From positions 208,603 through 272,602 of the IMG/VR virus record IMGVR_UViG_3300026484_000007: a stretch of DNA of 64,000 bases; one strand, 5' to 3'. The notes beneath the pieces are model-generated. The model was not told the DNA's origin, searched no databases, and saw only the letters and a list, made by a program, of their open reading frames with translations. Positions 5,217-60,617 of the stretch are shown here, in pieces. Made by a program: the position numbers and the translations under genes. Numbering within the stretch: position 1 is the first letter of the stretch; every line of letters begins with the position of its first letter.

Positions 5217-6283
5217 GCCAAATATCAAATCAAGTAAATCATAATTGTAAAGTTAAAAAATTATTTAATCCAGATGTTCAGGATGAACACAAATTATACG
5301 GAGGTTGTACGACAAATACATTAGATCTTGCTAACGTAAAATATCCAGTGTTCGTTGATTGGGTGGATAAACAATACGCAAATAACTGGTTACCTCAAAA
5401 AGTTGATATGACTGGGGATTATAGTCAATACTGGAATGATTTAACAGATGATGAAAGAGTTGCGTTTGATAATATTTTATCTTTCTTAATATTCTTAGAT
5501 AGTATTCAAACGAACAATCTTCCTAATATTGCAGATTATATTACATTACCTGAGGTTGTATATGCATTAGCAAGACAAACATATGACGAAGCAATACATA
5601 GTCGTTCATATGGATTAATATTAAATTTTAATATTAAAGATAAAGCTAAAATAGAAGAAATTACTTATCTTTGGAGAAAAAATAAAATTCTTTTAGAAAG
5701 AAATAAAAAAATTGCAGAGATCTATCAAGACGCAAAAGATAATCATTCTGATCTTAATTTTATCAAAGGTCTTATAGGGAATTTTATGTTAGAAGGAATT
5801 TATTTTTATAATGGATTTCAGTTCTTTCATAATCTTGCATCAAGAGGTCTTATGATTGGAACAGATACTCAAATCAGATATATCCAAAGAGATGAATTAG
5901 GACATTTAAAGCTTTTCGCTGATATTATTAAAATATCGCAAGAAGAAAATCCAGAAATTTGGACAGACGAAGTTAAAGAAATCGTTTACGATATGTTTAG
6001 AGATGCTGTAGATCTTGAAATTAAATTTAGTCAAGATGTTATTGGAGATAAAATTCTTGGAATGAGTTCACAAGCAATCGAAGATTACGCTTATTGGCTT
6101 GGGAATAAAAGACTTAAAGAAATTAAATTAAAACCAATTTTTCCAGAAAGAAAAAATCCTTATTCTCATTTAGAAAAAATTGCTTCTGTCGAAGATGAAA
6201 GTTCAAATAGAACTAATAACTTCGAAAGCACATCAATTACTTATAAATCTCCAGAAATTCTTGATGGATGGGATCAAATTTAA
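5213..6283 (+). CDS. nrdB: ribonucleoside-diphosphate reductase class Ia beta subunit
   Basis: NNWLPQKV, FLDSIQ, EAIHSRSY, LEGIYFYNGF, IQRDELGH, NFESTSITY. Confidence 0.97.
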   Translation: MSQISNQVNHNCKVKKLFNPDVQDEHKLYGGCTTNTLDLANVKYPVFVDWVDKQYANNWLPQKVDMTGDYSQYWNDLTDDERVAFDNILSFLIFLDSIQTNNLPNIADYITLPEVVYALARQTYDEAIHSRSYGLILNFNIKDKAKIEEITYLWRKNKILLERNKKIAEIYQDAKDNHSDLNFIKGLIGNFMLEGIYFYNGFQFFHNLASRGLMIGTDTQIRYIQRDELGHLKLFADIIKISQEENPEIWTDEVKEIVYDMFRDAVDLEIKFSQDVIGDKILGMSSQAIEDYAYWLGNKRLKEIKLKPIFPERKNPYSHLEKIASVEDESSNRTNNFESTSITYKSPEILDGWDQI

Positions 6284-6305
6284 AACCGATTTAAAAAGGA
6301 ATCAA

Positions 6306-6491
6306 ATGTTACTTAAAGAATGTAATGGTTGCAAATATCTAGCTCGATTGATCGGTATAGGTCAAGGAGTTAGATGTACAAATCCAGAAAATCAAATAAC
6401 TGGAATGGATGGATCAAAAGCGATAGTTATATCTCAGATAGAGAATTGTAATTATTATAAGCAACATAAAAAAGATAAGAAAGAATCTTAA
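6306..6491 (+). CDS. small Cys4 (zinc-binding-like) protein
   Basis: AAAGGA RBS before the ATG at 6306; CNGC...C...C pattern. The track's start at 6180 overlaps nrdB and is unlikely. Confidence 0.6.
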   Translation: MLLKECNGCKYLARLIGIGQGVRCTNPENQITGMDGSKAIVISQIENCNYYKQHKKDKKES

Positions 6492-6512
6492 AAGGATCTT
6501 AAAAAGATCCAA

Positions 6513-6540
6513 TTGAAATATTTTTTTTGAAATTTAAGAT
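6513..6540 (+). promoter_or_regulatory. sigma70-like promoter for the large ncRNA
   Basis: TTGAAA-N16-TAAGAT ending about 9 nt before the first strand of the closing helix. Confidence 0.45.
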
Positions 6541-6672
6541 TTTCTTTAACTTTCTTTATCAGGCGATAAAAATCGAATAATCCCGCCTGACTGGAGCGAA
6601 ATACCAGTCACAAAATTATTTTACATGGGTTAAAATAAGGAGATCGCACTGAAGATGCGCTTTTATAATTAC

Positions 6673-6744
6673 ACCAAAAACGAAGGTTCGATTCCTTCCT
6701 TTCCCAACATAATAGGGAAAGTAGCCAAGAGGTAAGGCATTGGT
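6673..6744 (+). tRNA. circularly permuted tRNA-like domain (3' half precedes 5' half, no closed anticodon loop)
   Basis: ACCAA-aaac-GAAGG-TTCGATT-CCTTC-CTTTCCC-A, 8-nt linker, then GGGAAAG-TA-GCC-AAGAGGTAA-GGC-A-TTGGT. All four stems pair perfectly. Confidence 0.8.
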
Positions 6745-6775
6745 TCCAAAATATAAATATATAACAATCGAACGA

Positions 6776-6859
6776 AAAGTTCAAAGTAAAAAATTTAAAA
6801 TTTAATGCTTAAATACTAACTACTAAAAATTAACCTTCAAAATTTAAAATAAAAAGCTT
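6776..6859 (+). repeat. 12 consecutive degenerate 7-nt units, each starting AA
   Basis: aaagttc aaagtaa aaaattt aaaattt aatgctt aaatact aactact aaaaatt aaccttc aaaattt aaaataa aaagctt. Confidence 0.7.
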
Positions 6860-6938
6860 TTTAAAATCTTGGAGGAAGTTTTAAGTGGCGAGGATTAGCC
6901 CGATTTTTGATCCAAGCTGCTTGATAGAGAAAGACTTC

Positions 6939-6976
6939 AAAACCCTCGCATAGTGCGAGGGTTTTTTTGTCGTTAG
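6939..6976 (+). terminator. intrinsic terminator with GTCGTTAG tail
   Basis: AAAACCCTCGCA-TAG-TGCGAGGGTTTTTTT. Confidence 0.9.
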
Positions 6977-7015
6977 AAAAAATTAGATAAAATTAGAAAA
7001 ATAAAAAAATTTTGT

Positions 7016-7110
7016 AAATAAAATCTATGGGGAGCAATGCTCCCCATAGGGGGACTTTGTCCCCCTTGGAGGAGTGGAGACTTTTCGTCTCCACTCCTCT
7101 CTTTCTGCTA
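7016..7110 (-). ncRNA. GC-rich triple-hairpin cassette 1 (putative small RNA; strand uncertain)
   Basis: Hairpins CTATGGGGAGC/GCTCCCCATAG, GGGGGAC/GTCCCCC and GAGGAGTGGAGAC/GTCTCCACTCCTC. Leftward promoter-like motif at 7116-7145. On the - strand the last hairpin is followed by ATTTTATTT. Confidence 0.5.
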
Positions 7111-7115
7111 TTTAT

Positions 7116-7145
7116 ATATCAATTAAAACTAAAGCAGTTCTAAAA
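7116..7145 (-). promoter_or_regulatory. bipartite motif TTTTAGAACT-N14-(A/T)GATAT (putative phage promoter)
   Basis: Same motif and spacing at 7334-7363, 7966-7995 and 8695-8724, the last directly upstream of the only - strand gene. Confidence 0.55.
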
Positions 7146-7166
7146 AATCTCCGTAAATAAAATTAC

Positions 7167-7328
7167 AAATAAAATCTATGGGGAGCATTGCTCCCCATAG
7201 GGGGACTTTGTCCCCCACTCACTGGGGTGGTTGCCCACATTGGCAACGGGAGCAATCCCGCTCATTTGAGCGGGGCCCGACCACCCCGGAGGACTCACCT
7301 CCTTTCTTGGAGTCCTCCTTTTTTGCTA
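7167..7328 (-). ncRNA. GC-rich multi-hairpin cassette 2 with SD/anti-SD loop (putative small RNA; strand uncertain)
   Basis: Shares the two terminal hairpins with cassettes 1 and 3. Extra multibranch domain at 7224-7287. Hairpin 7288-7318 has loop ACCTCCTTTCTTG. Confidence 0.55.
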
Positions 7329-7333
7329 ATTAA

Positions 7334-7363
7334 ATATCTGATAAAACTAAAGCAGTTCTAAAA
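7334..7363 (-). promoter_or_regulatory. TTTTAGAACT-N14-AGATAT motif
   Basis: Copy of the bipartite motif, followed on the - strand by TAGCAAAA. Confidence 0.55.
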
Positions 7364-7442
7364 AATCTTTATAAATAAATTTAAAAAATCTTTTCTAAAA
7401 CAATATATAAATTATCAATTAAAATATATAAGGAGATTAATT

Positions 7443-7727
7443 ATGGCAACTGCTTTTCATAAAGATTACAATGCAGAATACGTAATCGGTGATGACGTTG
7501 TAAATTCTGAAGAAGTAAAAAATACTCAGCCAACTGTATTATCTAAAATTATAGATGGAAAACCAGCTGATGTTAATACCGAAACTAAAGATATGCTAAC
7601 CGAAGAAACTGTATGGTTTAGAAATGACAGAATCAGACAAACTCTTCAAGATCAATACACTGAAGTTTCTAGACAAACTTTTGAAATTGATCAATTTGAA
7701 ACTACTGATTTACCAGGAAATCCATAA
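7443..7727 (+). CDS. hypothetical protein
   Basis: 94 aa, AAGGAG RBS. Confidence 0.75.
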   Translation: MATAFHKDYNAEYVIGDDVVNSEEVKNTQPTVLSKIIDGKPADVNTETKDMLTEETVWFRNDRIRQTLQDQYTEVSRQTFEIDQFETTDLPGNP

Positions 7728-7778
7728 GCAAATATTGCGATGCATGGCGCTAATGGATAACTCGTATATATATCTCAT

Positions 7779-7826
7779 AAAACTCCGGAGTTCTAAAATA
7801 GAGCTCTGGAGTTTTTTTGTCGTTAG
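7779..7826 (+). terminator. intrinsic terminator with GTCGTTAG tail
   Basis: AAAACTCCGGAGTTCT...AGAGCTCTGGAGTTTTTTT. Confidence 0.7.
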
Positions 7827-7865
7827 AAAAAATTAGAAAAAATTAGAAAAAATAAAAAAATTTGC

Positions 7866-7960
7866 AAATAAAATCTATGGGGAGCAATGCTCCCCATAGG
7901 GGGACTTTGTCCCCCTTGGAGGAGTGGGGAATTTTCATCTCCACTCCTCTCTTTCTGCTA
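7866..7960 (-). ncRNA. GC-rich triple-hairpin cassette 3 (near copy of cassette 1)
   Basis: Part of a ~185-bp direct repeat (6961-7145 vs 7811-7995). Confidence 0.5.
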
Positions 7961-7965
7961 TTTAT

Positions 7966-7995
7966 ATATCTAATAAAACTAAAGTAGTTCTAAAA
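7966..7995 (-). promoter_or_regulatory. TTTTAGAACT-N14-AGATAT motif
   Basis: Copy of the bipartite motif. Confidence 0.55.
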
Positions 7996-8042
7996 ATAAT
8001 TAAAAATTAATGCGAAAAAAAGAGACAGAAGCGTCAGTAGGC

Positions 8043-8663
8043 TTAAGCCTCCGATTGATGCTTTTTAAGCAATTTATCGAAGGCTTTCAGATACCTACTA
8101 ATCTTGACAATATACACAATTGTCGCCCCTGAAATTATCCCGAATAGGAGTATAACTCCATTGTCGGGCAACTTCAGGTATGAATAGCCCATTAATAATA
8201 GGGCCACAACCAATTGCACTCTCGAGCGCGCTTTATTCACGTCACTCGAAAACGTCTCCGCCTCTTCTGAATTCAGCAAGACGTTCGTCAAAACTGAATT
8301 CATGTTCGCCTGAACGGCGAACAACAATACATACAGCGGAAAGATCAATACGACGATCTTTGCCGCTAATACTCTATCTATCTCCGGATGGAGATAGAAT
8401 AGGTACACTAGAATGCAGAAATACGCTACATCTAGTGTGCTTAATAACACGAAGCTCGCAAAGTAGCTAATTTTGTGTGTTAGCCACTTATTGAACTCCA
8501 TCATTGTAGCGCTCATTAGACTAATGAACGCGATAAACCCAACCGAGAACTCACCATAAAGGTGAGACTCAAATGGTTGAATTATTTGGAAAGCTAAGCT
8601 TCCCAGAATAACTATCTTTATTCTTAATGTTAAGAATAAAGACTTCAATACTTCCATCTTCAT
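8043..8663 (-). CDS. polytopic membrane protein (about 5-6 TM)
   Basis: AAGGAG RBS on the - strand, several hydrophobic helices, visibly more GC-rich than neighbours. Confidence 0.75.
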   Translation of the reverse strand: MKMEVLKSLFLTLRIKIVILGSLAFQIIQPFESHLYGEFSVGFIAFISLMSATMMEFNKWLTHKISYFASFVLLSTLDVAYFCILVYLFYLHPEIDRVLAAKIVVLIFPLYVLLFAVQANMNSVLTNVLLNSEEAETFSSDVNKARSRVQLVVALLLMGYSYLKLPDNGVILLFGIISGATIVYIVKISRYLKAFDKLLKKHQSEA

Positions 8664-8694
8664 CTTTTCTCCTTTGATTTTTTTGCTATTTTAG

Positions 8695-8724
8695 ATATCT
8701 CATAAGCCTTTACCAGTTCTAAAA
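8695..8724 (-). promoter_or_regulatory. TTTTAGAACT-N14-AGATAT motif upstream of the - strand gene
   Basis: - strand reads TTTTAGAACT ggtaaaggcttatg AGATAT ctaaaaTAGCAAAAAAATCAAAGGAG...ATG. Confidence 0.6.
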
Positions 8725-8824
8725 AAAACTTCGATTTTCTTAACAAAGATTTTCTTAACAAACGAAGAAAATTCATAAGAATAAAATACAAATAAATACA
8801 AAAATATTTAATTAAGGAGTATTA

Positions 8825-10273
8825 ATGGGTTTTGATTTACTCGATATAAATAAATTTATTAAAGAAAAGGATGCTAAAGAAGTAACATCCGAAAAAACAT
8901 TTTTATTTACAAAAGGCGATTTTATTCCAGATCCAAATGGTTTATATAGTCCACAGATCTTCGAAGGAACTGGTATTAAAGGACAACGGGATAAATACGG
9001 ATACATATCTTTAAAAAATACAATTATGCATCCATTAATTTATAAGAATCTAAAAAAGATTGCTACAATTTTTTATTATGTAGCAACTTCTGAAAAACAC
9101 GTTGAAATTATTGATGGTGAACTTATAGAAACACCACCAGAAAACGGTGGTAAAACTGGATTAGACTTTCTAATAAATAATTGGAAAAAAATTAATTTAG
9201 ATAAATACAAGAAAGAAACGAATGAATTCTTTATTGAGTTTCTAAAGAAAGTTCAAGAAAAATTAATTTTTATTAATAAACTTCCAGTTATTCCAGTACT
9301 TTATCGACCTTATACTTTTGAACACGGACGAGTAATTGAAGATGAAATTACTGAAAAGTATAAAAAAATTTTATTAGAATACAAAAAAACTATGGGAGGT
9401 CTTTCCGGTCAGCCTTTGAATTCGTTGAATTCTAAAAATTTAACTGCGTCTGAAGATGCAGTTAGTTTAACTGGAAGAAGATCTACTATATCTAACATTG
9501 ATAACCCATTAGGTATTTCTGATGATAATGGATTAGAATTATTAAATTCATTTATTCAGAATAATGTAAATTCTTCAGAAAAAGTTCAAAAATACGTTCA
9601 GGATCTATATGATTATTTTATTTCTAAATTAGAGAAAAAAGAAGGTTTCTTTAGAAGTAATTTAGTAGGTAAAAGATTAGATAATGTATCAAGATTAGTT
9701 GCTAATGCTCGTCCAGATATACCAGTAGATTGCGTAGGTATTCCTTGGCATGTATTAATTAATATTTTTGATTATTACGTATTAGCTGAGTTAGAGCATA
9801 ATAAAGATGTCGCTGAAAAACTTGGTCTTGCTGACATTAGTACAGTAGACTTTGGAAAACACATCTATTATATCTATAAAAACTGTGATATTTATTGCAA
9901 GTCGTTTCCTGAAAGACAACAGATATGGATAGAATTACTTACAGAAATCTTTGATAAACATGATTATCTTAGAGTAGTATTTAAACGGGATCCAGGTTGG
10001 TCAGCGAATTCATTCTGGTCAGTAAAACCATTAATCTTAAAAGGATGTTCGTATTACATTGTTGTAAATTCATTTTATTACAAACCACTTGGTGGAGATA
10101 GTTTTAATACTAATATTCTAATTAAAGAATCTACTCAAAAATCTATTACTAAAGATTTAATTTTATCAAAGGATCCAAAAAAGATCCAAAAAAGATATAC
10201 GTTAGAATTTCCAGTAGCTAATGAAGCAAAAACATTAAAAAATTATTACGAAAAAAATAAAAAGGAGAAATAA
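8825..10273 (+). CDS. DNA-directed RNA polymerase beta' subunit, N-terminal fragment
   Basis: GLYSPQIF, YGYISL, LPVIPVLYRP, KKEGFFRSNLVGKRLD, VVFKRDP. Ends at PLGGD (NADFDGD position) followed by an unrelated 57-aa tail. Confidence 0.88.
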   Translation: MGFDLLDINKFIKEKDAKEVTSEKTFLFTKGDFIPDPNGLYSPQIFEGTGIKGQRDKYGYISLKNTIMHPLIYKNLKKIATIFYYVATSEKHVEIIDGELIETPPENGGKTGLDFLINNWKKINLDKYKKETNEFFIEFLKKVQEKLIFINKLPVIPVLYRPYTFEHGRVIEDEITEKYKKILLEYKKTMGGLSGQPLNSLNSKNLTASEDAVSLTGRRSTISNIDNPLGISDDNGLELLNSFIQNNVNSSEKVQKYVQDLYDYFISKLEKKEGFFRSNLVGKRLDNVSRLVANARPDIPVDCVGIPWHVLINIFDYYVLAELEHNKDVAEKLGLADISTVDFGKHIYYIYKNCDIYCKSFPERQQIWIELLTEIFDKHDYLRVVFKRDPGWSANSFWSVKPLILKGCSYYIVVNSFYYKPLGGDSFNTNILIKESTQKSITKDLILSKDPKKIQKRYTLEFPVANEAKTLKNYYEKNKKEK

Positions 10274-10974
10274 TGGCTAGAGCACCTAAAACAACAAGAC
10301 GAAAAAGAAAAAATCAAGAAGAATTACAAACAGCACAAAATACTCAAGATGTACAAACAACGTTAAACGAAGAAGGATCTTTAAAAGATCCAAACAAGTT
10401 AACTGATTTAACGGAACCGACAGATTTAAAAGATCAATCTAATTTAACTGATTTAACTGAGCCAACAGTTGAAATCGATAATGAATCTAAAAATGAATCT
10501 TTAAAAGATCTAACTGAGCCTACTATATCTACTGGCGAAACAACTGAGCCAACAGTTGAAAATGTATCTCAAGAAGATCCAACTGCAGAAGAGCTTAAAG
10601 AAACTTCAGAAAAAGAAATTTTAGAAGAAGCTAAAGAAGAAGCTAAAGAAGATACCAAATCTGCAAAAAAACGTAATACTAAAAAGCGATCTAAAAAAGA
10701 TTCTGAGGTTGAAGTCGCTCAATCCAATCAATCTAATCAGATCAATCAAGAATCTAAAAAAGATCGAAAAAAGATCTCTTTTTTAGATAAAGTAAAAATG
10801 GCTGCAAGAAATGAATTATCGGAAACCGAAAAATTAAAACAAGAATTAATTAAAAAATCAGTTTCTGATGTTTTAACTCAAGAATATCAAAATACCGTTT
10901 ATGTATCTAAAGCAGATCAAAATAAAATAAAAGATAAACATGTTACTTATAATATGTCAGATCTTGGATTTTAA
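10273..10974 (+). CDS. low-complexity charged protein with DLTEPT repeats
   Basis: AAGGAG RBS; basic N-terminus and acidic repeats. Confidence 0.75.
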   Translation: MARAPKTTRRKRKNQEELQTAQNTQDVQTTLNEEGSLKDPNKLTDLTEPTDLKDQSNLTDLTEPTVEIDNESKNESLKDLTEPTISTGETTEPTVENVSQEDPTAEELKETSEKEILEEAKEEAKEDTKSAKKRNTKKRSKKDSEVEVAQSNQSNQINQESKKDRKKISFLDKVKMAARNELSETEKLKQELIKKSVSDVLTQEYQNTVYVSKADQNKIKDKHVTYNMSDLGF

Positions 10975-10992
10975 TATTAAAAAGGAGAATGT

Positions 10993-11724
10993 ATGTATTT
11001 AGCGTTAATGATCGAAGAATCATTTAATGAATTTCTTCAAAAAAATAATCTTCCTCAAACTACTTTAGAAGAAACCCACTATTTAAAAACCGGAAAAAAT
11101 CCTGGTTCTTTTAATTTAATTGAAGAAGGAGCTTTAGCTCGAGGAGCTGGGCTTGGGGCTCTTGTAGGTACTGCTGCGGTAGGAACTGCTCTTGGTATGG
11201 ATCATAGTCACATGCATGACATGCGCGACGCTTACGATTTCGCTCATAATGATGAAACTGGATTAGAAAATTCAAAAATAAATCAAGGGATTAAAGATGC
11301 TTTAAAATCAGATAATGAAACTGAATTTAAAGACAATAATGGAGAAGCTCCAAAAGATAAACCAGATTTAATTGATTCTGCGGAAGAAAGAAAGAAAATC
11401 GATGAATTCGTGAAAAACTGGAATGCGGAACATAAAGACCATCCATTGTCGACTAACGACATTATTAGTAAATACAATATGACTCAAAATAAAGAATTTA
11501 CTCAACTTCAAAGCAGAATCGATAATGCAGATTTAAATAAATCTAAAGCATTCCAATCTAATTGGGATAGTCTAAAACAAGGCGTTGGTAATCTTTGGAG
11601 TGGTTCTAAAGAAGGGCTTAACGATAAAGCGCTTGGAGCATTAAAAGTTGGTGGAGCAGCAATTGGTGGTGGAGCAGCAATTGGTGCAACATTAGGTGGA
11701 ATTCTTGGAAATAATAGAAGATAA
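10993..11724 (+). CDS. glycine-zipper virion-like protein (paralog family)
   Basis: IEES and IEEG motifs, N-terminal GAGLGALVG segment, C-terminal GGAAIGGGAAIGATLGG. Confidence 0.6.
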   Translation: MYLALMIEESFNEFLQKNNLPQTTLEETHYLKTGKNPGSFNLIEEGALARGAGLGALVGTAAVGTALGMDHSHMHDMRDAYDFAHNDETGLENSKINQGIKDALKSDNETEFKDNNGEAPKDKPDLIDSAEERKKIDEFVKNWNAEHKDHPLSTNDIISKYNMTQNKEFTQLQSRIDNADLNKSKAFQSNWDSLKQGVGNLWSGSKEGLNDKALGALKVGGAAIGGGAAIGATLGGILGNNRR

Positions 11725-11773
11725 TAGAAGATAATATAAAATAAAAATAAAAATTTTATAAAAGGAAGCGAAT

Positions 11774-13126
11774 ATGGCTTATGTTTTTAAAAAAGACAAA
11801 AACGGTAAATTAAAATTGATTAAACCATCAACCTCGGCTACCTCAACGACCGACAAAAGTGATCTTTTAAAGATCACTAATTCTCATAATTCTCATACTT
11901 CACTCAAAAGAACAATTGAGGAAAATTCATCTGCTATTTTAGAAGTTCCTATAGAAAAAGAAACCGAAAAATTTATCGAGACTCGAGACTGGGTAATTCC
12001 AAAAAAATTCATGATGCCAGATTGGGTAGAAAAAAATTTAAAAGACTTTAAAGATCAAGCAAGAGAAATTATCTCAAACGCAGACGAATCTTCTATAGAT
12101 TCAATTAATCCTAAAATTAAAAAATTAATTGAAGAATTAATTCTTGATAATAAAGTTAAACCTAAGTATCCTTTAAATAAAAAGACTCTTGGAAAATTAT
12201 CGAATGAAATGTGGAAAGTCTTCGGTGAAGATGAATTCATGTATCGATATTGGATACTACAAGAAGCTGGATTTTTTCTAAGTACTTTTAAACCATCTGG
12301 ATTTGAACCTGAGGCTCTACAATTACCTGAAAAATTCGTTAAAAGAAAAGACGCATTATTAAAAGAATTTGAAAAACGAGTTAAAGAACACGGTAAAGAT
12401 AAAGCGGTAGCTTGGATTGATAAAGAATTTAATAATTTAACCAACGAGGTAATCGATTACTGGGAAGAAAAAGGTATTAACGTTGTAGATATGATTAGAT
12501 CAGGAGCAAGAGGTGGTCCAGCGGATATTAGAAAAATGCTTGTTGCTGTTGGGTTAAGTATTGATAGTTCAGGAAAACCAAACGACGTTATTATGACGTC
12601 ACAAATCGAAGGTTTATCTCAAACTCAATTCTTTCATTATTCTTCACAAGCAATTATGGCATTATATGCAAAATCTTCAGAAACTGCTGTTCCAGGTTAT
12701 CTTGCAAGAAAATTAAGTACAGTTGCGGACGCGGTAAATCTTTCAGAAGTTGAAGATTGTAAAACGAAGAGATTTTTGGAAGTAACAGTTCTTGATTCAG
12801 ATGTTCTTAATGCGTTAGATGGTAGAGTATTGCATACAGGTAAAGTTATTGATTCTGAAAAAGATACTAATTTAATTGGTAAAAAAATTAAAATTAGATC
12901 GCCTTTATATTGTAAGGCAACTGATGGTATATGCGCTACATGTTATAATAAAAAAATTATTCAGAAAATGAATTGGCAGCCTGGAGAAAAAATTGGGTTG
13001 CATGCAGCTACAACTCTTGGAGATCAAGCATTAGTAAACTTAACACTTAAAAAATCTCATGTTGGTCTTTCATTAAATATGGAAACCGTAGATTTAGAAA
13101 AAGATATTTTTCAATTCGCAGAGTGA
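11774..13126 (+). CDS. RNA polymerase beta' subunit, middle fragment (bridge helix, Zn site, trigger loop)
   Basis: MIRSGARG, EGLSQTQFF, ETAVPGYLARKL, EDC, IRSPLYC...GICATCY, GEKIGLHAATTLGD...LTLKKSHVG. Confidence 0.9.
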   Translation: MAYVFKKDKNGKLKLIKPSTSATSTTDKSDLLKITNSHNSHTSLKRTIEENSSAILEVPIEKETEKFIETRDWVIPKKFMMPDWVEKNLKDFKDQAREIISNADESSIDSINPKIKKLIEELILDNKVKPKYPLNKKTLGKLSNEMWKVFGEDEFMYRYWILQEAGFFLSTFKPSGFEPEALQLPEKFVKRKDALLKEFEKRVKEHGKDKAVAWIDKEFNNLTNEVIDYWEEKGINVVDMIRSGARGGPADIRKMLVAVGLSIDSSGKPNDVIMTSQIEGLSQTQFFHYSSQAIMALYAKSSETAVPGYLARKLSTVADAVNLSEVEDCKTKRFLEVTVLDSDVLNALDGRVLHTGKVIDSEKDTNLIGKKIKIRSPLYCKATDGICATCYNKKIIQKMNWQPGEKIGLHAATTLGDQALVNLTLKKSHVGLSLNMETVDLEKDIFQFAE

Positions 13127-13164
13127 TCTTTTTTAGATCACTCTCTAGCTTTTTTTGTCATTAG
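13119..13164 (+). terminator. terminator on a GATC palindrome, with GTCATTAG tail
   Basis: AGAGTGATCTTTTTTAGATCACTCT...TTTTTTTGTCATTAG. Confidence 0.65.
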
Positions 13165-13176
13165 ATAATTTTTCCT

Positions 13177-13317
13177 GAAAACTCGTGATCTTAAAACGTT
13201 GAGCTTCATTAGATATCTAAAGATATATACGAGTTCTAAAATTTATAAAACCGTTTTAGAACTCGTATATATCCTTAGCATCGAAAAAAGATGCTACTTG
13301 AAAAATCAAAGTTTTTC
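13177..13317. repeat. ~140-bp dispersed palindromic element, copy A
   Basis: GAAAACTCGTGATC..AAAACGTTG..GATATATACGAGTTCTAAAA..TTTTAGAACTCGTATATATC..GATGCTAC..AGTTTTTC. Confidence 0.85.
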
Positions 13318-13372
13318 TTTTTCATTTTTTAAAAAATTGAATTTTTTAAACGAAGCCAAAAAAGGATTTTTT

Positions 13373-14464
13373 ATGAGCGCGGCAAGCACAACGAGAGTGA
13401 TAAATTTAAACAGATCAATCTTTTATCTTAATCAATCTTGTGTAAAAGAAATTCATGAATCTTCAATGTTAATTGAAGAAATTTCAAGTAAAGAAATAAT
13501 TTCAAAAATAAGATCATTTATGCCTAATTTAGATAATAAAATTGCTAAGCAATTTAATAATATATATAGAATTTTATCTAATGCGTTAGCATCTAAAAAA
13601 GATCTTGAAAGAATAAAAAAGATCAATGATGAGCAAATGAAAGCCATCGAAAAATATTTAAAAAAGAATGGTATAAATACTAAAAAATTAAAAGATAGAC
13701 TTAAAGAGAAAAAACAATTAACTCCAACCGATTTAGATTTAATCATCGAGATGGGATTAATTGAATTAAAACACACAACTGCGAAAGATTTTATTGAAGT
13801 CGTAGCTTTCGTTTTAGTAGCTTTTATTTTAAATACTTTTATTATTTATTCTATACTTGATCTTATATTTTTCATCAATCCATTGGCTAATTATAGTCAA
13901 GCTATGATGGTAGCTGTTTCAATTGGAGCAGTACTTTCAGCACCATTCGTTGAAGAAGCTGGTAAACGAGTAAGTATTGAAAGAAAAAAAGGTTTACTGT
14001 ATATTATAGGTTTTAATATTGCTGAATATACTTCTTATGTTTCTGCAGCTGCAGGAGCAGGTCTTGGATACATGATAATTATGATGATTGTTCGATTGTT
14101 ACCGGTTGCAATGCATTTCTCAAATTATAGTATTCATCAAAAAGGTGATATTGATCAAAAAATAGCAGATAAGTATAAAATTTCTACTGAAAGAGATTTC
14201 AGACAAGACGCTCAACGAATAGCAATGACAATACATAGATTTTGGAATATTGGATTAATATTTTTAGCTCCACTTGCAGGTTGGGCAAATTCTTATTTTA
14301 GCAATAAATTTCCTGTGAAAAAAATTGAAGAAAAAATTGAACCAAGATCATATTTAAACGAAATTCAAAAATTCTTTAAAGAAAAATCTAAAACTTTAAA
14401 ATACATTAATGCTAAAAAAGTAATCGAAAAAAATATCAAAAAAAATATCAAAAAGGATAAATAA
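13373..14464 (+). CDS. PrsW/M82-like intramembrane glutamic protease with soluble N-terminal extension
   Basis: APFVEEAGK, GFNIAE, AMHF and IHRFWN motifs in TM segments. AAGGA RBS before ATG 13373; the track's start at 13199 lies inside the repeat. Confidence 0.65.
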   Translation: MSAASTTRVINLNRSIFYLNQSCVKEIHESSMLIEEISSKEIISKIRSFMPNLDNKIAKQFNNIYRILSNALASKKDLERIKKINDEQMKAIEKYLKKNGINTKKLKDRLKEKKQLTPTDLDLIIEMGLIELKHTTAKDFIEVVAFVLVAFILNTFIIYSILDLIFFINPLANYSQAMMVAVSIGAVLSAPFVEEAGKRVSIERKKGLLYIIGFNIAEYTSYVSAAAGAGLGYMIIMMIVRLLPVAMHFSNYSIHQKGDIDQKIADKYKISTERDFRQDAQRIAMTIHRFWNIGLIFLAPLAGWANSYFSNKFPVKKIEEKIEPRSYLNEIQKFFKEKSKTLKYINAKKVIEKNIKKNIKKDK

Positions 14465-14746: not shown

Positions 14747-15154
14747 ATGGCTAATAAAAATTATACAGTTGGCCTTGATAAAAAATATTTAGATCTAGTT
14801 GACGCAGATCTAACTCCAGAAAATCAAAGATTTTTAAATGATTACGTTGCTAAAAAATTAAGAATGATAGATAACACTATCATCGCAAATCATCTTAAAA
14901 AAATGGATCAAGAAGCTTCTCATTATAAAAATCTTGATAACTTTGAAAAACAAGAGATAATTAATTCCGAAAGATGGAAAAATCCATTGATCGGTGCAAC
15001 TATTGGAGGAGCTCTTGGTTTTGGACTTACTGATGTAATCAGTGGAAATCCTACGACCGATGGAATATTTGGCGCTCTTGGGTTAGGAGTTGGAGCTTAT
15101 CAAGGTAAGAAATATACTGATTTTAAATTAAAAAGGCAAGGATTGATAAAATGA
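14747..15154 (+). CDS. glycine-zipper membrane-type protein
   Basis: GATIGGALGFG and GALGLGVGAY. Confidence 0.65.
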   Translation: MANKNYTVGLDKKYLDLVDADLTPENQRFLNDYVAKKLRMIDNTIIANHLKKMDQEASHYKNLDNFEKQEIINSERWKNPLIGATIGGALGFGLTDVISGNPTTDGIFGALGLGVGAYQGKKYTDFKLKRQGLIK

Positions 15155-15894
15155 AACGAAGAAATTATTTTAATTATTTAAAAGGATCTGCAAAAGATCT
15201 TTTAGAAGAAAATGATCGTTATCGAGCGTTCTATCCCACTTCCACTGCCGCTGCCGCTCCACAAAGATCAATTTGGTCGGATATGAAAAACGGCGCAAAA
15301 AATCTTGGGAATAGCATAGTAAATTCTGCTAGTAAATTTGGATCTAAAATAACTAATGACCCAAAAATTGCTGCAGCTACAGGAGCAGCGATAGGTGGAG
15401 CTCTTCATCTTTACGATGTTCATGATGCAAAATCTGATTTATCTGATCTTATGGGCAAAAATTTTGATGCAGAAAAAATTAATAAAGATACATTCAATAG
15501 CAATTATGAGCAATACAAAGATCTTTATAATAAAGAAGGTATTAATAAATTTGATGCGAATAACGATGGATACTTAGATAAAAACGAACTTCATAAACTT
15601 TATAATACATATAAAAATGATACAAGTTGGTTCCCGTGGTGGAATGATGCAGATGATAAAATCAGTGCGGCTAAAGAATATTATGATTATATTCAAAAAA
15701 CTCCAGCAATGGATTTTAATAAAGATGGAATTGTAGATTCTAATGACACTAAAGCAATGAAAGATGTTGATCGTGTCGTTAATAGTAGTTTACCTGCGAA
15801 CTTAATGGGTGGTGCTGCAATTGGAGGAGCTCTTGGATATGGAACTAATAAACTTAATTCAAAACTTAATTCAAAATTTGGAGGACATTCATGA
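15151..15894 (+). CDS. glycine-zipper protein with two EF-hand-like loops
   Basis: GAAIGG at both ends; DANNDGYLDKNE and DFNKDGIVDSND. Confidence 0.65.
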   Translation: MKRRNYFNYLKGSAKDLLEENDRYRAFYPTSTAAAAPQRSIWSDMKNGAKNLGNSIVNSASKFGSKITNDPKIAAATGAAIGGALHLYDVHDAKSDLSDLMGKNFDAEKINKDTFNSNYEQYKDLYNKEGINKFDANNDGYLDKNELHKLYNTYKNDTSWFPWWNDADDKISAAKEYYDYIQKTPAMDFNKDGIVDSNDTKAMKDVDRVVNSSLPANLMGGAAIGGALGYGTNKLNSKLNSKFGGHS

Positions 15895-16658
15895 AAAATA
15901 TAAAAAAGACAAGAACGCTTAATTATTTAAATGAGGCATCTAATAGAGATCTTTCAATTGCTTTAACTGGATTAGGTTTTGGAATTGGTGGAGCCGCTCT
16001 TGGCGACTCAATATATGATGCTCACTTAGATCATTATAATTCCGAATTCCAAAAACAATTTTCCGATATTAATGCCACCAAAGATCAATTATTGAATGAA
16101 AAATTTGGTGATCCTGAAAATAATAAAGAAGCTCTTCAATCATATCAAGATCAATACAATAAAATAAAATTTGCTGATTTTAATAAAGATGGTTTCGTTG
16201 ATGAACGAGAATACAACAAAGCACTTGAAAATTATAAAAATTATATTAACAGCGGAGGTAATAATCCATTCTCTGATAATTATAAAAATTTAGATTATAA
16301 ACCAGATACAGTAAAACAATTAAATACTTATAAAAATTTATTACATGATAAAGATTTTGTATCTAAATTCGATGTAAATCAAGATGGAACATTTAACGCA
16401 AGAGAATTACAGTTATTGAAAAAACTTCCAGAGTATCAAGACAGAATGAATTCTTTTGAATATCAACCATATTTATATGGAACTGCTGGAGCAATAGCGG
16501 GAATGAAATTAATGGATGCTGCGACTAGAGGCGAAAGTTCTGATAAAGATCGAATAAATTTTCCAAGTAATAGATTTGCTCCGTTTGGTGCTCCAAAAAG
16601 ACCAAACGAATCTCAAGAAATCGTAGATAAAGTTCCACTACCACCGATAGTAAAATAA
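15891..16658 (+). CDS. glycine-zipper protein with two EF-hand-like loops
   Basis: GLGFGIGGAALG; DFNKDGFVDERE and DVNQDGTFNARE; C-terminal GTAGAIAG. Confidence 0.65.
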   Translation: MKNIKKTRTLNYLNEASNRDLSIALTGLGFGIGGAALGDSIYDAHLDHYNSEFQKQFSDINATKDQLLNEKFGDPENNKEALQSYQDQYNKIKFADFNKDGFVDEREYNKALENYKNYINSGGNNPFSDNYKNLDYKPDTVKQLNTYKNLLHDKDFVSKFDVNQDGTFNARELQLLKKLPEYQDRMNSFEYQPYLYGTAGAIAGMKLMDAATRGESSDKDRINFPSNRFAPFGAPKRPNESQEIVDKVPLPPIVK

Positions 16659-19418: not shown

Positions 19419-22400
19419 ATGATCAAAAAAGATACGTCTGATGCTACATTAAAATTAAAATCTGCAAAATTTTATATAGATTTTCATAATGAAAAAAATA
19501 ATAAATTATTTTTTTATGAAGTTTATTCTAAGAAAAAAGGAACTGCTGGAGCAGAGCGTCTCGAATACGCTTATATGACTCCAGACGACGAAGTGATCTT
19601 TTACAAACCCATCGATGATATCGAAGAGCATGAAATACCAAAGAAAGATCTTCGAGAGTTTCTTCTTGGTAGAATTAATAGCATAGCGATGTTAAAATTA
19701 GGAGCTAGAGTTGATATTAAATCAAAATCTTCTAAACCTACTTTTAAAATTAAAGCGTTGAGCAATGAACCCGAAGTAATTCTTTTTGCTAGTATTATTT
19801 TAGGATTAAGACCTGCGCTAGATTTCATGGGAATAAAGTATAGTTTTAATAAGACTAAAGAAGGTTATAAATCTATAAAACTATCCACTCAAGATGGTAA
19901 AACTAAATATTTTAATATTTATGCTAACTCTTTATACGATGAATACGTTTTAAATGGAATGTCTTCTTTTATTAAGAAAATTGAATTCACTGAAGAAAAT
20001 TTATCTTCTAAAGATGTATTCATAACTTATTTCGATAATCGTTTTGGTAAAGGTTTATTTAATTCTTATAATCAAAAGTTAGTATCTTTTATAGATACAA
20101 CGACTGAGCAAATTTTAAGATCGTATGGTTATAGTACGGATCCATTAAAATTATTATGTATAACTATGCCTAAGAAAATACTAAACGAAGCAGTCGATGA
20201 TATCGATAATCTTGAAAATAAAAGAATTAGAATGGCTGAAAGTATTGCTCACTCAGCTTATAATGCAGTTTCGCAAGCTCTTGTAAAATTCAAGAAAGAA
20301 TCTAAATTAGATAACGTTAAATTACATATTCAAAAAGATTATATTATTAATAATCTTATTAACACTGGTATGGTTCAATGGAGTAATCCAGTTAACCCAT
20401 TAGAAGAATTAACTACTTCTGCAAAAATTACTAAAACTGGGGTTGGGAATCCATTAAAAGAACAGATCACTATAGACAAAAGGGATCTTAATGAAAGTTA
20501 TTTTGGAGTTGTATCTGCGACACATACTAATGAGTACGGTGGAATAGGTTTAAACCAAACTCTCGTAAATAAAATGATGATCAAAGATAGATTCGGAAGT
20601 ATTTTAATTAAAAAATTCCAAGATACTAATCCTTTTGAAATACTAAGTCCAATTGAAAGTATTGCTCCATTTATGGATACAGATGATACTACTAGAAAAG
20701 TTATGGGGAATCAGCAAACCTCACAATTCATTCAAGTTAAAAATCCAGATGTTCCTCTTGTTCAAACTGGTTTTGAAGCTTATATACCTTATATAGTATC
20801 TGATAGATTTGCAATGAAAGCTAAAAAACCTGGAACTGTTAAATTAGAAAAAGACTATATTATAATGAAATACAATGATGGTTCTGAAGAAATCTTTAGT
20901 ACTAAACCCACTAAAGCGAGAACTAAAAGAGGTCTTTATATTCCAATTGAATATAACGTTCTTGTAAAAGATGGTCAAAAAGTAAAAGAAGGAGAAATCC
21001 TTGCAGCAACTAATTCTTTAAAACACGGAAAATTAGGTATAGGAAAAAATTTAGTAGTCGCAGAAATGTCTTATCGAGGTATGAATTACGAAGATGGTTG
21101 GGTAATATGCGAAGACCTTAAAGAAAAATATCAAAGTTCTTTATATGAAAAAATTACTATAATTATTCCAGAAGGTGCTAAGATTCAAGATTTTAATATT
21201 GAATTAAATAAAAACACTAAACCTGGAGAAAAATTAATTTCGTATGTTACAAACGCAACTGAGTCTTTAGAATTCGATGAAGAAAATAGTATTACTGATG
21301 AAAATACTGATGATTTAAGTACAGGTAAAGAGATTAGAGGTAATACAGTAACTTACTATAGTATCGGTGGACAAATTGCAGATTTTGTAATAAAATTAAA
21401 TTCTACTAAAATTGATAAAAAAATTATAGAAAAATTTAAATTTCAAAATTCAGAAATTGAAAAAAAATTAAAGATTTGCGAAAAACTCAAAAATGAAATT
21501 AATAAATTAGATTGTAGAGATAACATTGAACATCTTGAAGCTCTTGAAGTTGGTGGACATAAAGCAAATAAAATGGAGCCAGAAGGAGCGATTATTGAAG
21601 TCTATATCGAAACAGAAAATCCAATCAGAAACGGATCAAAATTTACTTTAGCGAGTACTGGTGGTAAAGGTACTGTACAATACATTATTGATAAAGATAA
21701 AAAACCTTATACAAAAGAAACTGGATTAGAAATTGATTTTATTGCGACTCCGTTGTCAATCATTTCAAGAAAAAACCCAAGTATTATTTTACAATTGTAT
21801 CTTGGAAAAGTAATTTATTTTCTAAATAAAAAAGTTGAAGAATTAGCTAAAGAAAATAAAATTTCTTCGGTTAGAACTTTAATTACTAAAGTATTTGAAA
21901 GAATTGATAAATCAGATGATAAAGTTTATCTAAATCAATTAAAAGGATTCTTAAAAAATAAAGATGATTTTCTTAAAAAATATATTTTAAAACATGATCC
22001 TTTAAATAACCCAGCTTTCCCAGCAATTATGCCTCCATTCGGAAGTAAATTAAGTACGAAAGATATCGAAGATGCTGCAGATATTCTTGGAATTCCTTTA
22101 CAAGAACATGTAATAATTCCAGAAGAAGATAATAAAGAGACTAAATATAAAGTTACTGTTGGAATTATGCCAGTATTTTATTTAGAACATTTTCCAAAAG
22201 CTATGTCAGGGGTAAGAGGAAGTATTAATGTTAAAAATCAATTAACGACTGGACAAGGTCGTGCCGGAACTAAAGAAGGAAACGGAGCAATTAAACTTGG
22301 TTTATATGATATGTTTTCCGTTACATCAAGACGAGCAAATAAGTTCATTAAAGAAATGTGGGCAGTAAAATCAGATGATTACGAAGCGAAAAAAGAACTT

Positions 22401-22538
22401 CGAAAGAAAATCATTAAATCAGCCGAAACTGGCGAAGAAATAAATGTTTCTGATATTGAAGTAAAACCAGAAGATATTACTACCAAAAAATTGATTGAAG
22501 CATATTTTTATGGAGCATGTTTGCAGCCACGTTTCTAA
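19419..22538 (+). CDS. DNA-directed RNA polymerase beta subunit, main fragment
   Basis: NKRIR, NPLEEL, RDLNESYFGVV..THTNEYGGIGL, DDTTRKVMGNQQTSQ, GKNLVVA..GMNYEDG, GSKF..GGKGTV, PLSIISRKN, GAIKLG. Confidence 0.93.
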   Translation: MIKKDTSDATLKLKSAKFYIDFHNEKNNKLFFYEVYSKKKGTAGAERLEYAYMTPDDEVIFYKPIDDIEEHEIPKKDLREFLLGRINSIAMLKLGARVDIKSKSSKPTFKIKALSNEPEVILFASIILGLRPALDFMGIKYSFNKTKEGYKSIKLSTQDGKTKYFNIYANSLYDEYVLNGMSSFIKKIEFTEENLSSKDVFITYFDNRFGKGLFNSYNQKLVSFIDTTTEQILRSYGYSTDPLKLLCITMPKKILNEAVDDIDNLENKRIRMAESIAHSAYNAVSQALVKFKKESKLDNVKLHIQKDYIINNLINTGMVQWSNPVNPLEELTTSAKITKTGVGNPLKEQITIDKRDLNESYFGVVSATHTNEYGGIGLNQTLVNKMMIKDRFGSILIKKFQDTNPFEILSPIESIAPFMDTDDTTRKVMGNQQTSQFIQVKNPDVPLVQTGFEAYIPYIVSDRFAMKAKKPGTVKLEKDYIIMKYNDGSEEIFSTKPTKARTKRGLYIPIEYNVLVKDGQKVKEGEILAATNSLKHGKLGIGKNLVVAEMSYRGMNYEDGWVICEDLKEKYQSSLYEKITIIIPEGAKIQDFNIELNKNTKPGEKLISYVTNATESLEFDEENSITDENTDDLSTGKEIRGNTVTYYSIGGQIADFVIKLNSTKIDKKIIEKFKFQNSEIEKKLKICEKLKNEINKLDCRDNIEHLEALEVGGHKANKMEPEGAIIEVYIETENPIRNGSKFTLASTGGKGTVQYIIDKDKKPYTKETGLEIDFIATPLSIISRKNPSIILQLYLGKVIYFLNKKVEELAKENKISSVRTLITKVFERIDKSDDKVYLNQLKGFLKNKDDFLKKYILKHDPLNNPAFPAIMPPFGSKLSTKDIEDAADILGIPLQEHVIIPEEDNKETKYKVTVGIMPVFYLEHFPKAMSGVRGSINVKNQLTTGQGRAGTKEGNGAIKLGLYDMFSVTSRRANKFIKEMWAVKSDDYEAKKELRKKIIKSAETGEEINVSDIEVKPEDITTKKLIEAYFYGACLQPRF

Positions 22539-49546: not shown

Positions 49547-50509
49547 ATGCTAAATGAAATTACTTTATTTATCACAAAAGAATGCAATATGAACTGCGAT
49601 TATTGTACTCAAGAAAATAATAAAGATTCGATAGATGATAATGAATCGCTAGAGTTAACAATCAAAACAATTGAAAGTTTAATCAAAGATAAAAAATTAA
49701 GTTCAAAAACTTCGTGGCATTTTTTTGGAGGAGAACCTACTTTAAAATTCGATAAAATGTTAAAATTATATAAGTATTTAAAAACTCAAGGCTTTAAAAA
49801 TTTTAAATTATTTACTAATGGATTAATAAAAGAATCTTTTTTAGATCACATTCCAAATGATATAATGATTTCGATATCCTACGATGGATTGTCTCAGAAA
49901 AATCGATCTTCAAAAGATCGTGATAAAATTATTAATAATATTAAATATTTAATTACTAAAAATAATTTTGAAAAAATAAATTTCATTTATGATGAATTTT
50001 TATTAAAAAATTATTTTTTTATTAGTGATCTTTTAAAGATCCCTGAGTGGAAAATTACACATAGTTTAAATAGAAATTTTTATTGGTGGACTCCAGAAAG
50101 AATTGAAAAATATTTAACCGAATTTAATGCTTTAGCAGAATATAATTTTTTTGCAAATATATATAGAAAAAATAAAGATATCGAAGATATATATTTTATG
50201 TATTTTCAAAATATATTTAATCAATCAAAAAGATCGATTTTAGGATGTGGGCTTAAAGATTCTCGAATAAGTATATATCCAGATGGATCTATCAAAAATT
50301 GCGGAATTAGATCATTTAATGAAGATGATTATGTTTCTCAAAAAGAGATTGAATCTTTTTGTAAAAATTGTGAAGCTTATAAATTCTGCGATAAAAAATG
50401 CCCTATCGAAATGAAAAAATTTCCAGAGCTTTTTCAATATTCTTTTTGTGAAATAAAAATAAATGAAATTAAAACGCTTGAAAAATATTTTAAAAAGGAA
50501 CTTAAATGA
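49547..50509 (+). CDS. radical SAM protein with SPASM-type C-terminus
   Basis: CNMNCDYC, FFGGEP, TNG, SYDG; CG...C...CKNC..FCDKKCP. Confidence 0.9.
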   Translation: MLNEITLFITKECNMNCDYCTQENNKDSIDDNESLELTIKTIESLIKDKKLSSKTSWHFFGGEPTLKFDKMLKLYKYLKTQGFKNFKLFTNGLIKESFLDHIPNDIMISISYDGLSQKNRSSKDRDKIINNIKYLITKNNFEKINFIYDEFLLKNYFFISDLLKIPEWKITHSLNRNFYWWTPERIEKYLTEFNALAEYNFFANIYRKNKDIEDIYFMYFQNIFNQSKRSILGCGLKDSRISIYPDGSIKNCGIRSFNEDDYVSQKEIESFCKNCEAYKFCDKKCPIEMKKFPELFQYSFCEIKINEIKTLEKYFKKELK

Positions 50510-50916
50510 ATTCAGAACTTATCTTATACAAGTATCTTATTACAGATAAAATACGATCTTTAAAAGATCTTTTTAATCTTAATCCAGATGAAAAATTAAT
50601 TTATGCAATAGATAATTTATTAGAGAGCGCTATTCTTTTTGAATCTTTAAATGATTCAAAACTAGAAAAAATTTCAGAAGAATTATTTAATCTTCATGAA
50701 AGATTATATTCGGAAATAGAAAATATAGTTCATAAAAAATTCCAAAATGAATTATTAAATGAAAAAATTATTAAAGAAAAGCAAGAGTACTACGAAGAGA
50801 TCTTAAAAAGATCACAAACTGATTTAGACAAAAAAGAATATGAAGATATCGAATCTCTCGAATTTCAATTGAAAAAGGATATAAGAAAGGATACAAGAAA
50901 GGATACTAAAAAATGA
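50506..50916 (+). CDS. hypothetical helical protein
   Basis: Translationally coupled to both neighbours. Confidence 0.7.
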   Translation: MNSELILYKYLITDKIRSLKDLFNLNPDEKLIYAIDNLLESAILFESLNDSKLEKISEELFNLHERLYSEIENIVHKKFQNELLNEKIIKEKQEYYEEILKRSQTDLDKKEYEDIESLEFQLKKDIRKDTRKDTKK

Positions 50917-52100
50917 AAGAAGCATCAAAAAATACAATAGAAAACACGGTAGTGATCGATTTAATTACTAATAAAGATTGCAATATGAATTGCAAGTATT
51001 GCTTTGAGCAAGGACATTTTAAGAATACTCAGCTAACCGAAGAAACAATAAATAATATTTTTAATTATATTAAATTATTAAAAGAAAAAGATCCTTCGGT
51101 AAATTTTGAATTTATTTTAATTGGTGGAGAACCGAGCATCGCAAAAAATTTAAATTTATTTTTAGAAAAATTGAAAACCTTAGACGAAAAGGATCTAAAA
51201 AAGATCACTTATATGACAAATGGATTATCAAAAGAAAAAATTGAAAATCATTTAAATCAAATAAATAATCTAATTGATCCTAAAAAGATCGAACTTCAAA
51301 TTTCTTATGATGGAAAAGGTTTTCATGATAAAAATAGATTATTTAAACAACAAGGGAATTTAATTCCTACAAGTGCTATTATAAAAGAGAATATCGATTA
51401 TTTTTATAATTCTGGTAAATGTTATGTTACTATAAAAAGTACAATAACTTATCAAGATTTATTAGATAAAGGATCTTTATTAGATACATTAAACGATTTT
51501 GAAGAATTAAATGAAAAATACCATATATTATATTCCGTTTCAGAAGACAAAACATCGTTCGAAATTCCTGAGAATTTATTTAAAAATAATTTAAATAAAT
51601 TATTAGAATCGTTATTGATCTTAGAAAGATTCGAAAAAGATTTCTTTAAAAAGAAAGGATATTTTTTGACTAAATGGTTTAATGGTGCTAGTTATAGAGC
51701 AGATAATAAAACTTGTGGTATGGGAAATAAAATTATTAGTTTTTCTCCAACGGGAGATGCAATGGCTTGCCATGCAATTGAATACTACGACACTAATGAA
51801 TCTAAAAAAGATCTTTTATACGGAAATATCAATCAAGACTCTTTAGATAGCATTTATGAAAATTTTGAAAGAATTAAAAAAGAAATCAATAATAATAAAT
51901 ACAACCAATGCATAGATTGCAAAACTTTATATTGTAGCAAATGTCCAGCATACACTTTCGAATCTTTAAAAGATCTAAAAAAGATCTATACTGGATCTAA
52001 ATTAAATAATCAAAATTTATGCAACTTTTTTAATTTATTAAGCATAAATATTTATAGAGTTTATAAAGAATTAAATATTCTTGATAAGCTGAAAAAATAA
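50913..52100 (+). CDS. radical SAM/SPASM protein
   Basis: CNMNCKYC, IGGEP, TNG, ISYDG; CGMG...ACH...CIDC...CSKCP...C. Confidence 0.92.
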   Translation: MKEASKNTIENTVVIDLITNKDCNMNCKYCFEQGHFKNTQLTEETINNIFNYIKLLKEKDPSVNFEFILIGGEPSIAKNLNLFLEKLKTLDEKDLKKITYMTNGLSKEKIENHLNQINNLIDPKKIELQISYDGKGFHDKNRLFKQQGNLIPTSAIIKENIDYFYNSGKCYVTIKSTITYQDLLDKGSLLDTLNDFEELNEKYHILYSVSEDKTSFEIPENLFKNNLNKLLESLLILERFEKDFFKKKGYFLTKWFNGASYRADNKTCGMGNKIISFSPTGDAMACHAIEYYDTNESKKDLLYGNINQDSLDSIYENFERIKKEINNNKYNQCIDCKTLYCSKCPAYTFESLKDLKKIYTGSKLNNQNLCNFFNLLSINIYRVYKELNILDKLKK

Positions 52101-52112
52101 AAAGGAGAAATT

Positions 52113-52682: not shown

Positions 52683-52729
52683 AAAATTATTAAAATTATT
52701 AAATTTAAATTTATTAAAAAGGAGAAAAT

Positions 52730-54377: not shown

Positions 54378-54423
54378 TTAAAATAATTAAAATAATAAAA
54401 ATAATAAAAAGCAAGGGAAATTA

Positions 54424-55945: not shown

Positions 55946-56075
55946 TTTTTAAAGTAGCATCTATTTTCGATACAAGCGATATAAAAGCAGTTCTAAAAAA
56001 TTTAGAACTGCTTTAGAACTCGTATATATCTTTGGGTATCTAATGAAGCGCAACGTTTTAGGATCACGAGTTTTC
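55934..56075. repeat. ~140-bp dispersed palindromic element, copy G (inverted)
   Basis: Reverse complement reads GAAAACTCGTGATCCTAAAACGTTGCGCTTC...GATGCTAC. Confidence 0.85.
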
Positions 56076-56134
56076 AAAGGAAAAAATGAAAGTATAAATA
56101 AATTTATAAATAAATCAAAGTCAAGGAATTATTT

Positions 56135-57845: not shown

Positions 57846-57865
57846 AAAATTTAAGGATTAATTTT

Positions 57866-60579: not shown

Positions 60580-60617
60580 AAATAATTTTTTTTACTAGAA
60601 TTATCAAAAGGAATAAT

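Follow-up and report, generated by a model that had tools for sequence, protein, structure and literature searches.

A predicted split intein interrupts the catalytic motif of an RNA polymerase beta' gene in a jumbo phage

Before this work, split inteins were known from 'fractured genes' in metagenomes (Dassa et al. 2009; PMC2677866), inteins of RNA polymerase genes from eukaryotes and giant viruses (PMC1635734), and a split PolB intein from the jumbo phage MIJ3 (PMC6892783). The closest described systems are encoded by two genes, a short N-terminal intein fragment (IntN) and a larger C-terminal one (IntC), with 25 and 104 aa in AceL-TerL and with 37 and 115 aa in GOS-TerL, the latter having Ser as its first residue (PMC11766414). 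Assembly of a fragmented phage enzyme without splicing also has a precedent, in the NrdA of phage Aeh1 (PMC3045599). Full-text literature searches returned no description of an intein, either split or unsplit, that interrupts DxDGD or belongs to a multisubunit polymerase of a phage.

The window analysed here, a stretch of 64 kb with a G+C content of 27%, forms the end of a viral contig of 272,602 bp that belongs to a hydrothermal-vent metagenome (JGI 3300026484 Ga0256837_1000001, the same as IMGVR_UViG_3300026484_000007), and its base 1 corresponds to base 208,603 of the contig. It carries jumbo-phage genes for a ribonucleotide reductase, a portal protein, a virion protein and pieces of a multisubunit RNA polymerase. 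One of these pieces, the gene for the N-terminal part of beta' (beta'-N), very probably represents one half, the N-terminal one, of a gene that a naturally split intein has divided directly after the first Asp of DxDGD. As the break cuts the Mg-binding motif, the catalytic centre would most likely form only once two separately made proteins have been spliced. The features relevant to this proposal are the following:

8825..10099, + strand: predicted N-extein, residues 1-425 of beta'-N, ending in PLGGD (phrog_2986, E 1.6e-33)
10100..10270, + strand: predicted IntN, 57 aa, beginning with Ser426 (stop codon at 10271-10273)
7992..9335 of locus L106 (contig 202,965-204,308), same strand, outside the window: predicted IntC (390 aa) plus C-extein (57 aa), ORF P0092
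11774..13126, + strand: next beta' piece, belonging to the same enzyme and not to the intein (phrog_2962, E 4.6e-23)
19419..22538, + strand: beta-subunit fragment with the second catalytic barrel, Rpb2 domain 6 (phrog_3148, E 4.4e-50)

A beta' gene interrupted within the DxDGD motif

The ORF at 8825..10273 (+), of 482 aa, is the N-terminal fragment of the beta' subunit of a phage multisubunit RNA polymerase of the AR9/phiKZ type. It was matched by tblastn to phiR1-37 g178, which is a virion protein, to BpSp gp212 and to a protein of the Staph phage Machias annotated as 'viral RNA polymerase beta-prime, N-terminal', and its AF2 model was best matched by the AR9 RNA polymerase beta'-N (7s01_d) and by bacterial beta'. 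Judging from the annotations of the matched phages, the multisubunit polymerase is probably a virion RNA polymerase.

Bases 10091-10099 of the window encode Gly423-Gly424-Asp425 and base 10100 begins the codon of Ser426. At the homologous place the canonical relatives BpSp gp212, P0089 and P0090/91 read (L/M)GGD(F/Y/H)DGD, whereas this ORF reads GGD|SFNTN, so that its match ends past the first Asp. The original prediction had described this switch from YKPLGGD to SFNTNILIK... at the motif, and the comparison with the canonical relatives confirmed it, with the break at Asp425|Ser426 and a tail of 57 residues running until the stop codon. A search of 5.8 billion proteins for homologues of beta'-N yielded 85 (35-62% identity), all of which have (G/A)GD|S followed by a tail of 34-65 aa (median 49). 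At the junction of this family G-G-D-S alone is invariant, while the remaining IntN residues vary freely. In the AF2 model the IntN tail is built of four beta-strands and one helix.

The absence of the DGD from every frame of the window, also claimed originally, held in a six-frame scan of all 64 kb, in which neither DxDGD nor DGD-x-hydrophobic was found in a beta' context. PHROG annotation of 25 large ORFs of the window gave beta'-N, beta'-middle and one beta fragment as the only RNA polymerase pieces, and the possibility of a missing DGD piece within the window was rejected on the basis of both assays. When canonical beta'-N relatives were compared with IMG/VR, the window's contig was absent among the best 80 of 159 loci, and a scan with P0087 for a second canonical beta'-N detected one unrelated contig only. 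As had been stated, beta'-middle resumes downstream, in the ORF at 11774..13126, which matches phrog_2962 and comprises Rpb1 domains 4/5, the bridge helix and the first half of the trigger loop, with weak matches to Pfam PF05000/PF04998; the beta fragment at 19419..22538 matches PF00562 over the curated cut-off (E 4.8e-16). The beta'-middle fragment terminates just past the first trigger-loop helix (...LKKSHVG...), and it therefore takes at least four coding pieces, including the intein-split one, to make up the beta' subunit of this phage. No C-terminal beta' piece of this phage was located.

Several other features were observed in the window. Upstream of beta'-N there is a 186-nt direct repeat (6961-7146 and 7811-7996, 94% identical), each copy of which has an AT-rich box, TATATATCTnATAAAACTAAAGCAGTTCTAAAAA, behind three tight hairpins rich in GC. 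Without the hairpins the box is also present at 7329, 7767 and 8690, which includes a site about 100 nt before beta'-N starts; repeat and box are candidate terminator/promoter cassettes in a genome with otherwise 27% G+C. In a non-coding region at 6560-6760, GGTTCGATTCC resembles the T-arm of a tRNA and the Rfam tmRNA matches are weak and below threshold; ARAGORN made no call on this stretch. Downstream of beta'-N, two neighbouring Gly-rich ORFs (15151-16658) have repeated, putative calcium-binding loops of the EF-hand/dockerin-like type (DxNxDG). Four radical SAM proteins (Pfam PF04055 over cut-off), one with a SPASM domain, are encoded at 49547-61622, adjoined by a Cys-rich 189-aa ORF (52113-52682), in what looks like a phage-carried peptide-modification cluster.

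The partner half and the alleles at the same site

The original prediction placed the rest of the motif in a separate gene, encoding a C-intein followed by (S/C/T)DGD and beta' sequence, and such a gene was found elsewhere in the same contig by scanning with an alignment of partner ORFs from IMG/VR relatives. This ORF, P0092, encodes 447 aa and is located 4.3 kb before the window start, upstream of beta'-N, with 13,119 bp from its stop codon to base 8825. Its junction reads ...LLKN|SDGDILG...FTK, in full KN|SDGDILGVMAVWTKDAAQEA. In the IMG/VR relatives the partner is an ORF of 380-450 aa on the same strand, 4.5-7 kb upstream of beta'-N, that ends in YDL(T/V)M..A(T/H)N(Y/F).L..P..KN|SDGD(I/V)LG..G.FTKEA...LGLYNATK; beta'-N is also present in 10 of the 12 IMG/VR contigs with the partner, and at least 12 pairs of N-half and C-half proteins come from equally long contigs. 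A block with RNase H, hemerythrin and ribonucleotide reductase genes sits between the two halves in our contig (from L106 9444-12617 to window 6283), and stretches the distance between them to 13 kb, compared with the shorter one in relatives.

The N|SDGD sequence was invariant in the 93 partner homologues (93/93). The 57 residues of P0092 past the Asn contain the missing DGD, the next strand and, from beta' region D, the helix 'TK(D/E)AA.EA', they align with the canonical tails and with that of an unsplit allele described below (P0236), and they have the size of a canonical tail (55 aa in BpSp). Joining of the 425-aa N-extein to this C-extein thus gives a complete beta'-N reading GGD-SDGD, canonical in length and motifs when BpSp gp212 is taken as reference. 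Only after such a joining of the D of the N-extein to the SDGD of the C-extein is the Asp triad of the beta'-N double-psi barrel whole.

Alleles of the same site were searched for with an HMM against 1.84 billion representatives. P0236 (915 aa) has an unsplit intein, GGD|CVKGN...QCN|SDGD, with a LAGLIDADG_3 match (E 6.8e-12), P0233 and P0235 have unsplit mini-inteins at the identical site, and the fragment P0237 reads N|CDGD, that is, with Cys at +1; the first intein residue is Cys in all four. P0239 is intein-free and reads LGGDSDGDAV, its Rpb1_2 domain running unbroken through the motif, so that its GGDSDGD is the very junction predicted for the phage of the window after splicing. By hhalign, the beta'-N family of the window aligned with P0236 (prob 99.9, E 1.9e-35) across the junction and for about 18 residues into the N-terminus of the intein, and a profile comparison matched the partner family to the intein end and C-extein of P0236 (prob 97.4, E 9.6e-12). 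Alignment with the unsplit alleles puts the split point some 35-50 residues into the intein. As judged from the homologues compared, the split arrangement is fixed in a whole clade of AT-rich jumbo phages, and the presence of intein-free, mini, endonuclease-bearing and split alleles in one clade documents how split inteins can arise.

These data bear on two other explanations for the interrupted motif. The first is that the ORF encodes a degenerate, catalytically dead beta' paralogue, in which DSFNTN has decayed from DFDGD by Asp-to-Asn changes and the tail corresponds to region D in diverged form. F-N-T-N does superficially resemble F-D-G-D, and a 57-aa tail is near the length of the canonical post-motif tail. 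However, the Asn positions of SFNTN are not conserved, the first being R/T/Y/S/F and the second D/R/K/S/E in the homologues, the tail aligns with the N-terminus of an unsplit intein, and the true DGD and the region-D helix sit on the partner. The Asn variation and the discovery of the partner together led us to reject a decayed motif, and with it the dead subunit that the original prediction had kept as an alternative; we consider a dead paralogue very improbable.

Even more improbable is the second explanation, an RNA-level event (a group I/II intron or RNA trans-splicing) or an assembly artefact near base 10100. Introns occur in the same motif of relatives (annotated in Machias and probable in phiR1-37, at DFDG|D), but Rfam gave no intron match here, either in the whole window at the gathering threshold or in positions 6000-14000 at E <= 5, and both interrupting segments are conserved as protein, so that an intron at base 10100 was rejected. 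Moreover, the C-half gene precedes the N-half and possesses a start codon of its own, which together with the protein-level conservation and the silence of Rfam contradicts RNA trans-splicing, the other alternative originally kept. Regarding a mis-assembly, the identical beta'-N protein is present on an independently assembled Logan contig, and a 1,696-nt contig from a different study of 2025 covers 8926-10630, so the junction is crossed by independent assemblies. Of the two outcomes named originally as refuting the split intein, a genome that lacks a complementary DGD-bearing ORF and a mis-assembly at this point, neither was observed.

Intein identity and the predicted splicing reaction

On comparative and modelling grounds, the element is a naturally, atypically split, cysteine-less intein at a new site, for which splicing is predicted. 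Comparison of alleles at one site is the strongest line of evidence for this identity, whereas sequence profiles are weak and the structural evidence is clear. Concerning the residues expected at the junctions, Ser occupies intein position 1 in all the split N-halves (85/85) and the C-terminal Asn followed by Ser(+1) is present in all the partners (93/93). The penultimate residue of the partner is Lys in 80 of 91 cases and His in 4 of 91. The Thr-x-x-His of block B is not present, (S/G)-E-x-x-S being found in both split and unsplit alleles, and P0092 has an invariant His29 upstream of the aligned block B. A block F-type strand, (M/V)YDL(T/V)M...(T/H)N(Y/F), was identified in the partners, with an invariant Asp368.

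Modelling of the C-half alone by AF2 (58 homologues; pLDDT 85, pTM 0.83) gave for the first 390 residues of P0092 a fold like that of an intein with a LAGLIDADG endonuclease. Foldseek against the PDB found five matches to this model below E 1e-3, all of them to endonuclease-bearing inteins (4.7e-8 to 1.5e-4), among them TliVMA 7qss (E 4.7e-8), PhoVMA, PI-PfuI and PI-SceI. At the profile level, Pfam Intein_splicing (PF14890) matched five partner homologues at 19.7-28.8 bits (E 1e-6 to 8e-4; gathering cut-off 35.8), and matched neither P0092 nor IntN; the NCBIfam intein models on both halves and a PDB sequence profile gave no match either. Thus the intein HMMs, which had been proposed as a check on the tail, did not recognize IntN. 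The look-alikes of the partner in the ESM Atlas, to be taken as leads only, were all LAGLIDADG_3/Intein_splicing proteins, several of them within viral Rpb1. The acidic residue of the LAGLIDADG-like motif of the partner is not conserved, and therefore the endonuclease-like domain of IntC has probably decayed. Taken with the alignment to the intein of P0236 and the Hint-like fold of the partner, the constant Ser1 supports the original assignment of the Ser-initiated tail as an N-intein.

A further explanation is non-covalent complementation, in which the intein halves have lost the splicing chemistry and serve as a docking module that joins the beta' pieces. The non-canonical block B, the penultimate Lys and the sub-threshold scores with curated intein HMMs are in favour of it, and Aeh1 NrdA offers a precedent (PMC3045599). 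However, Ser1, the terminal Asn and the Ser/Cys at +1, required only for splicing, do not vary among 85-93 sequences that share 30-60% identity, whereas adjacent positions drift, and the unsplit alleles at the same site have to splice in order to produce a continuous motif. The catalytic loop of RNA polymerase is buried, and an intein/endonuclease body of about 450 aa would stay on this loop if the halves only docked. Docking without splicing is thus unlikely in our estimation.

For the preferred reading, protein trans-splicing, the anatomy of the halves comes from the tools described above and the chemistry is taken from that established for class 1 inteins. The short IntN would dock on the large IntC and complete its fold, as in atypically split inteins, after which Ser426 would attack the Asp425-Ser426 bond to leave an ester at Asp425. 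Ser391 (+1) of the partner would then accept the N-extein, and cyclization of Asn390 would release the intein. The predicted product, a beta'-N of 482 aa, would have an uninterrupted GGD-SDGD and a normal Asp triad able to bind the catalytic magnesium. It is rather unlikely, though conceivable, that trans-splicing is a checkpoint and not a frozen accident, that the excised intein has a second role, and that a working intein without cysteines or block B His employs unusual chemistry. Were the checkpoint real, the virion RNA polymerase would become catalytic only upon co-expression of two genes at separate locations, and its activity could be timed or confined in this way.

Implications and comparison with known systems

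To our knowledge, all multisubunit RNA polymerases need one Asp triad. Here, this triad is encoded by two genes across about 90 phage lineages and its completion would need protein ligation, which would make it a natural case of a core catalytic motif that exists only post-translation. RNA polymerase beta' and its D|xDGD site would thereby join the list of intein homing sites, and introns and inteins would hit the same few codons, each in different jumbo phages. In practical terms, short-IntN cysteine-less split inteins are wanted for protein labelling and this family offers dozens of natural variants, whereas annotation pipelines would mislabel such a polymerase as inactive or truncated. The unusual traits of the split intein are the new host site, the endonuclease-like domain kept in IntC, the Ser/Ser junctions, the lack of the block B His and the C-to-N gene order.

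Like AceL-TerL and GOS-TerL, the element is encoded by two genes, its N-fragment being short and its C-fragment large and accounting for most of the Hint fold, and has a phage/metagenomic origin; with GOS-TerL it also shares Ser as the first residue. In contrast to both, the host protein is RNA polymerase beta' instead of a terminase, IntC has about 390 aa because the endonuclease-like domain is kept, block B lacks the His and the C-half gene is upstream of the N-half. Also unlike them, both nucleophiles are Ser, making the junctions cysteine-less.

The fractured genes and the MIJ3 PolB resemble this locus in that an essential phage nucleic-acid enzyme is broken at a conserved site in association with a homing endonuclease. 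There the halves are adjacent, in N-to-C order, and have a free-standing endonuclease ORF between them, whereas here the order is C-to-N, 4.5-13 kb separate the halves and IntC itself contains the endonuclease-like domain. The Hint plus LAGLIDADG architecture is that of TliVMA/PhoVMA (7qss/7qst), PI-PfuI (2cw7) and PI-SceI (1vde), which in contrast are single-chain inteins with Cys1, a canonical block B and His-Asn, and have 8-15% identity to the partner.

Similarly to the RNA polymerase inteins of eukaryotes and giant viruses, the target is a highly conserved site beside the active centre, and ESM Atlas clusters do combine Rpb1 with Intein_splicing; the published RNA polymerase inteins are, however, contiguous and mostly in the second-largest subunit, whereas this one is split and in beta'.

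Regarding the phages with introns, the deposited CDS of phiR1-37 g178 (L001 5001-7449) ends within the catalytic motif (GGDFDGKF*), with an ORF of 310 aa after it, and in Machias (L003 5001-6833) an intron is annotated at the same position, DFDG|D. The g178 gene is probably intron-interrupted and its annotation truncated. In both phages, as in the phage of the window, a mobile element interrupts the catalytic-motif codons of beta'-N, but there the break is three residues later and removal takes place at the RNA level, whereas here it would take place at the protein level and in trans.
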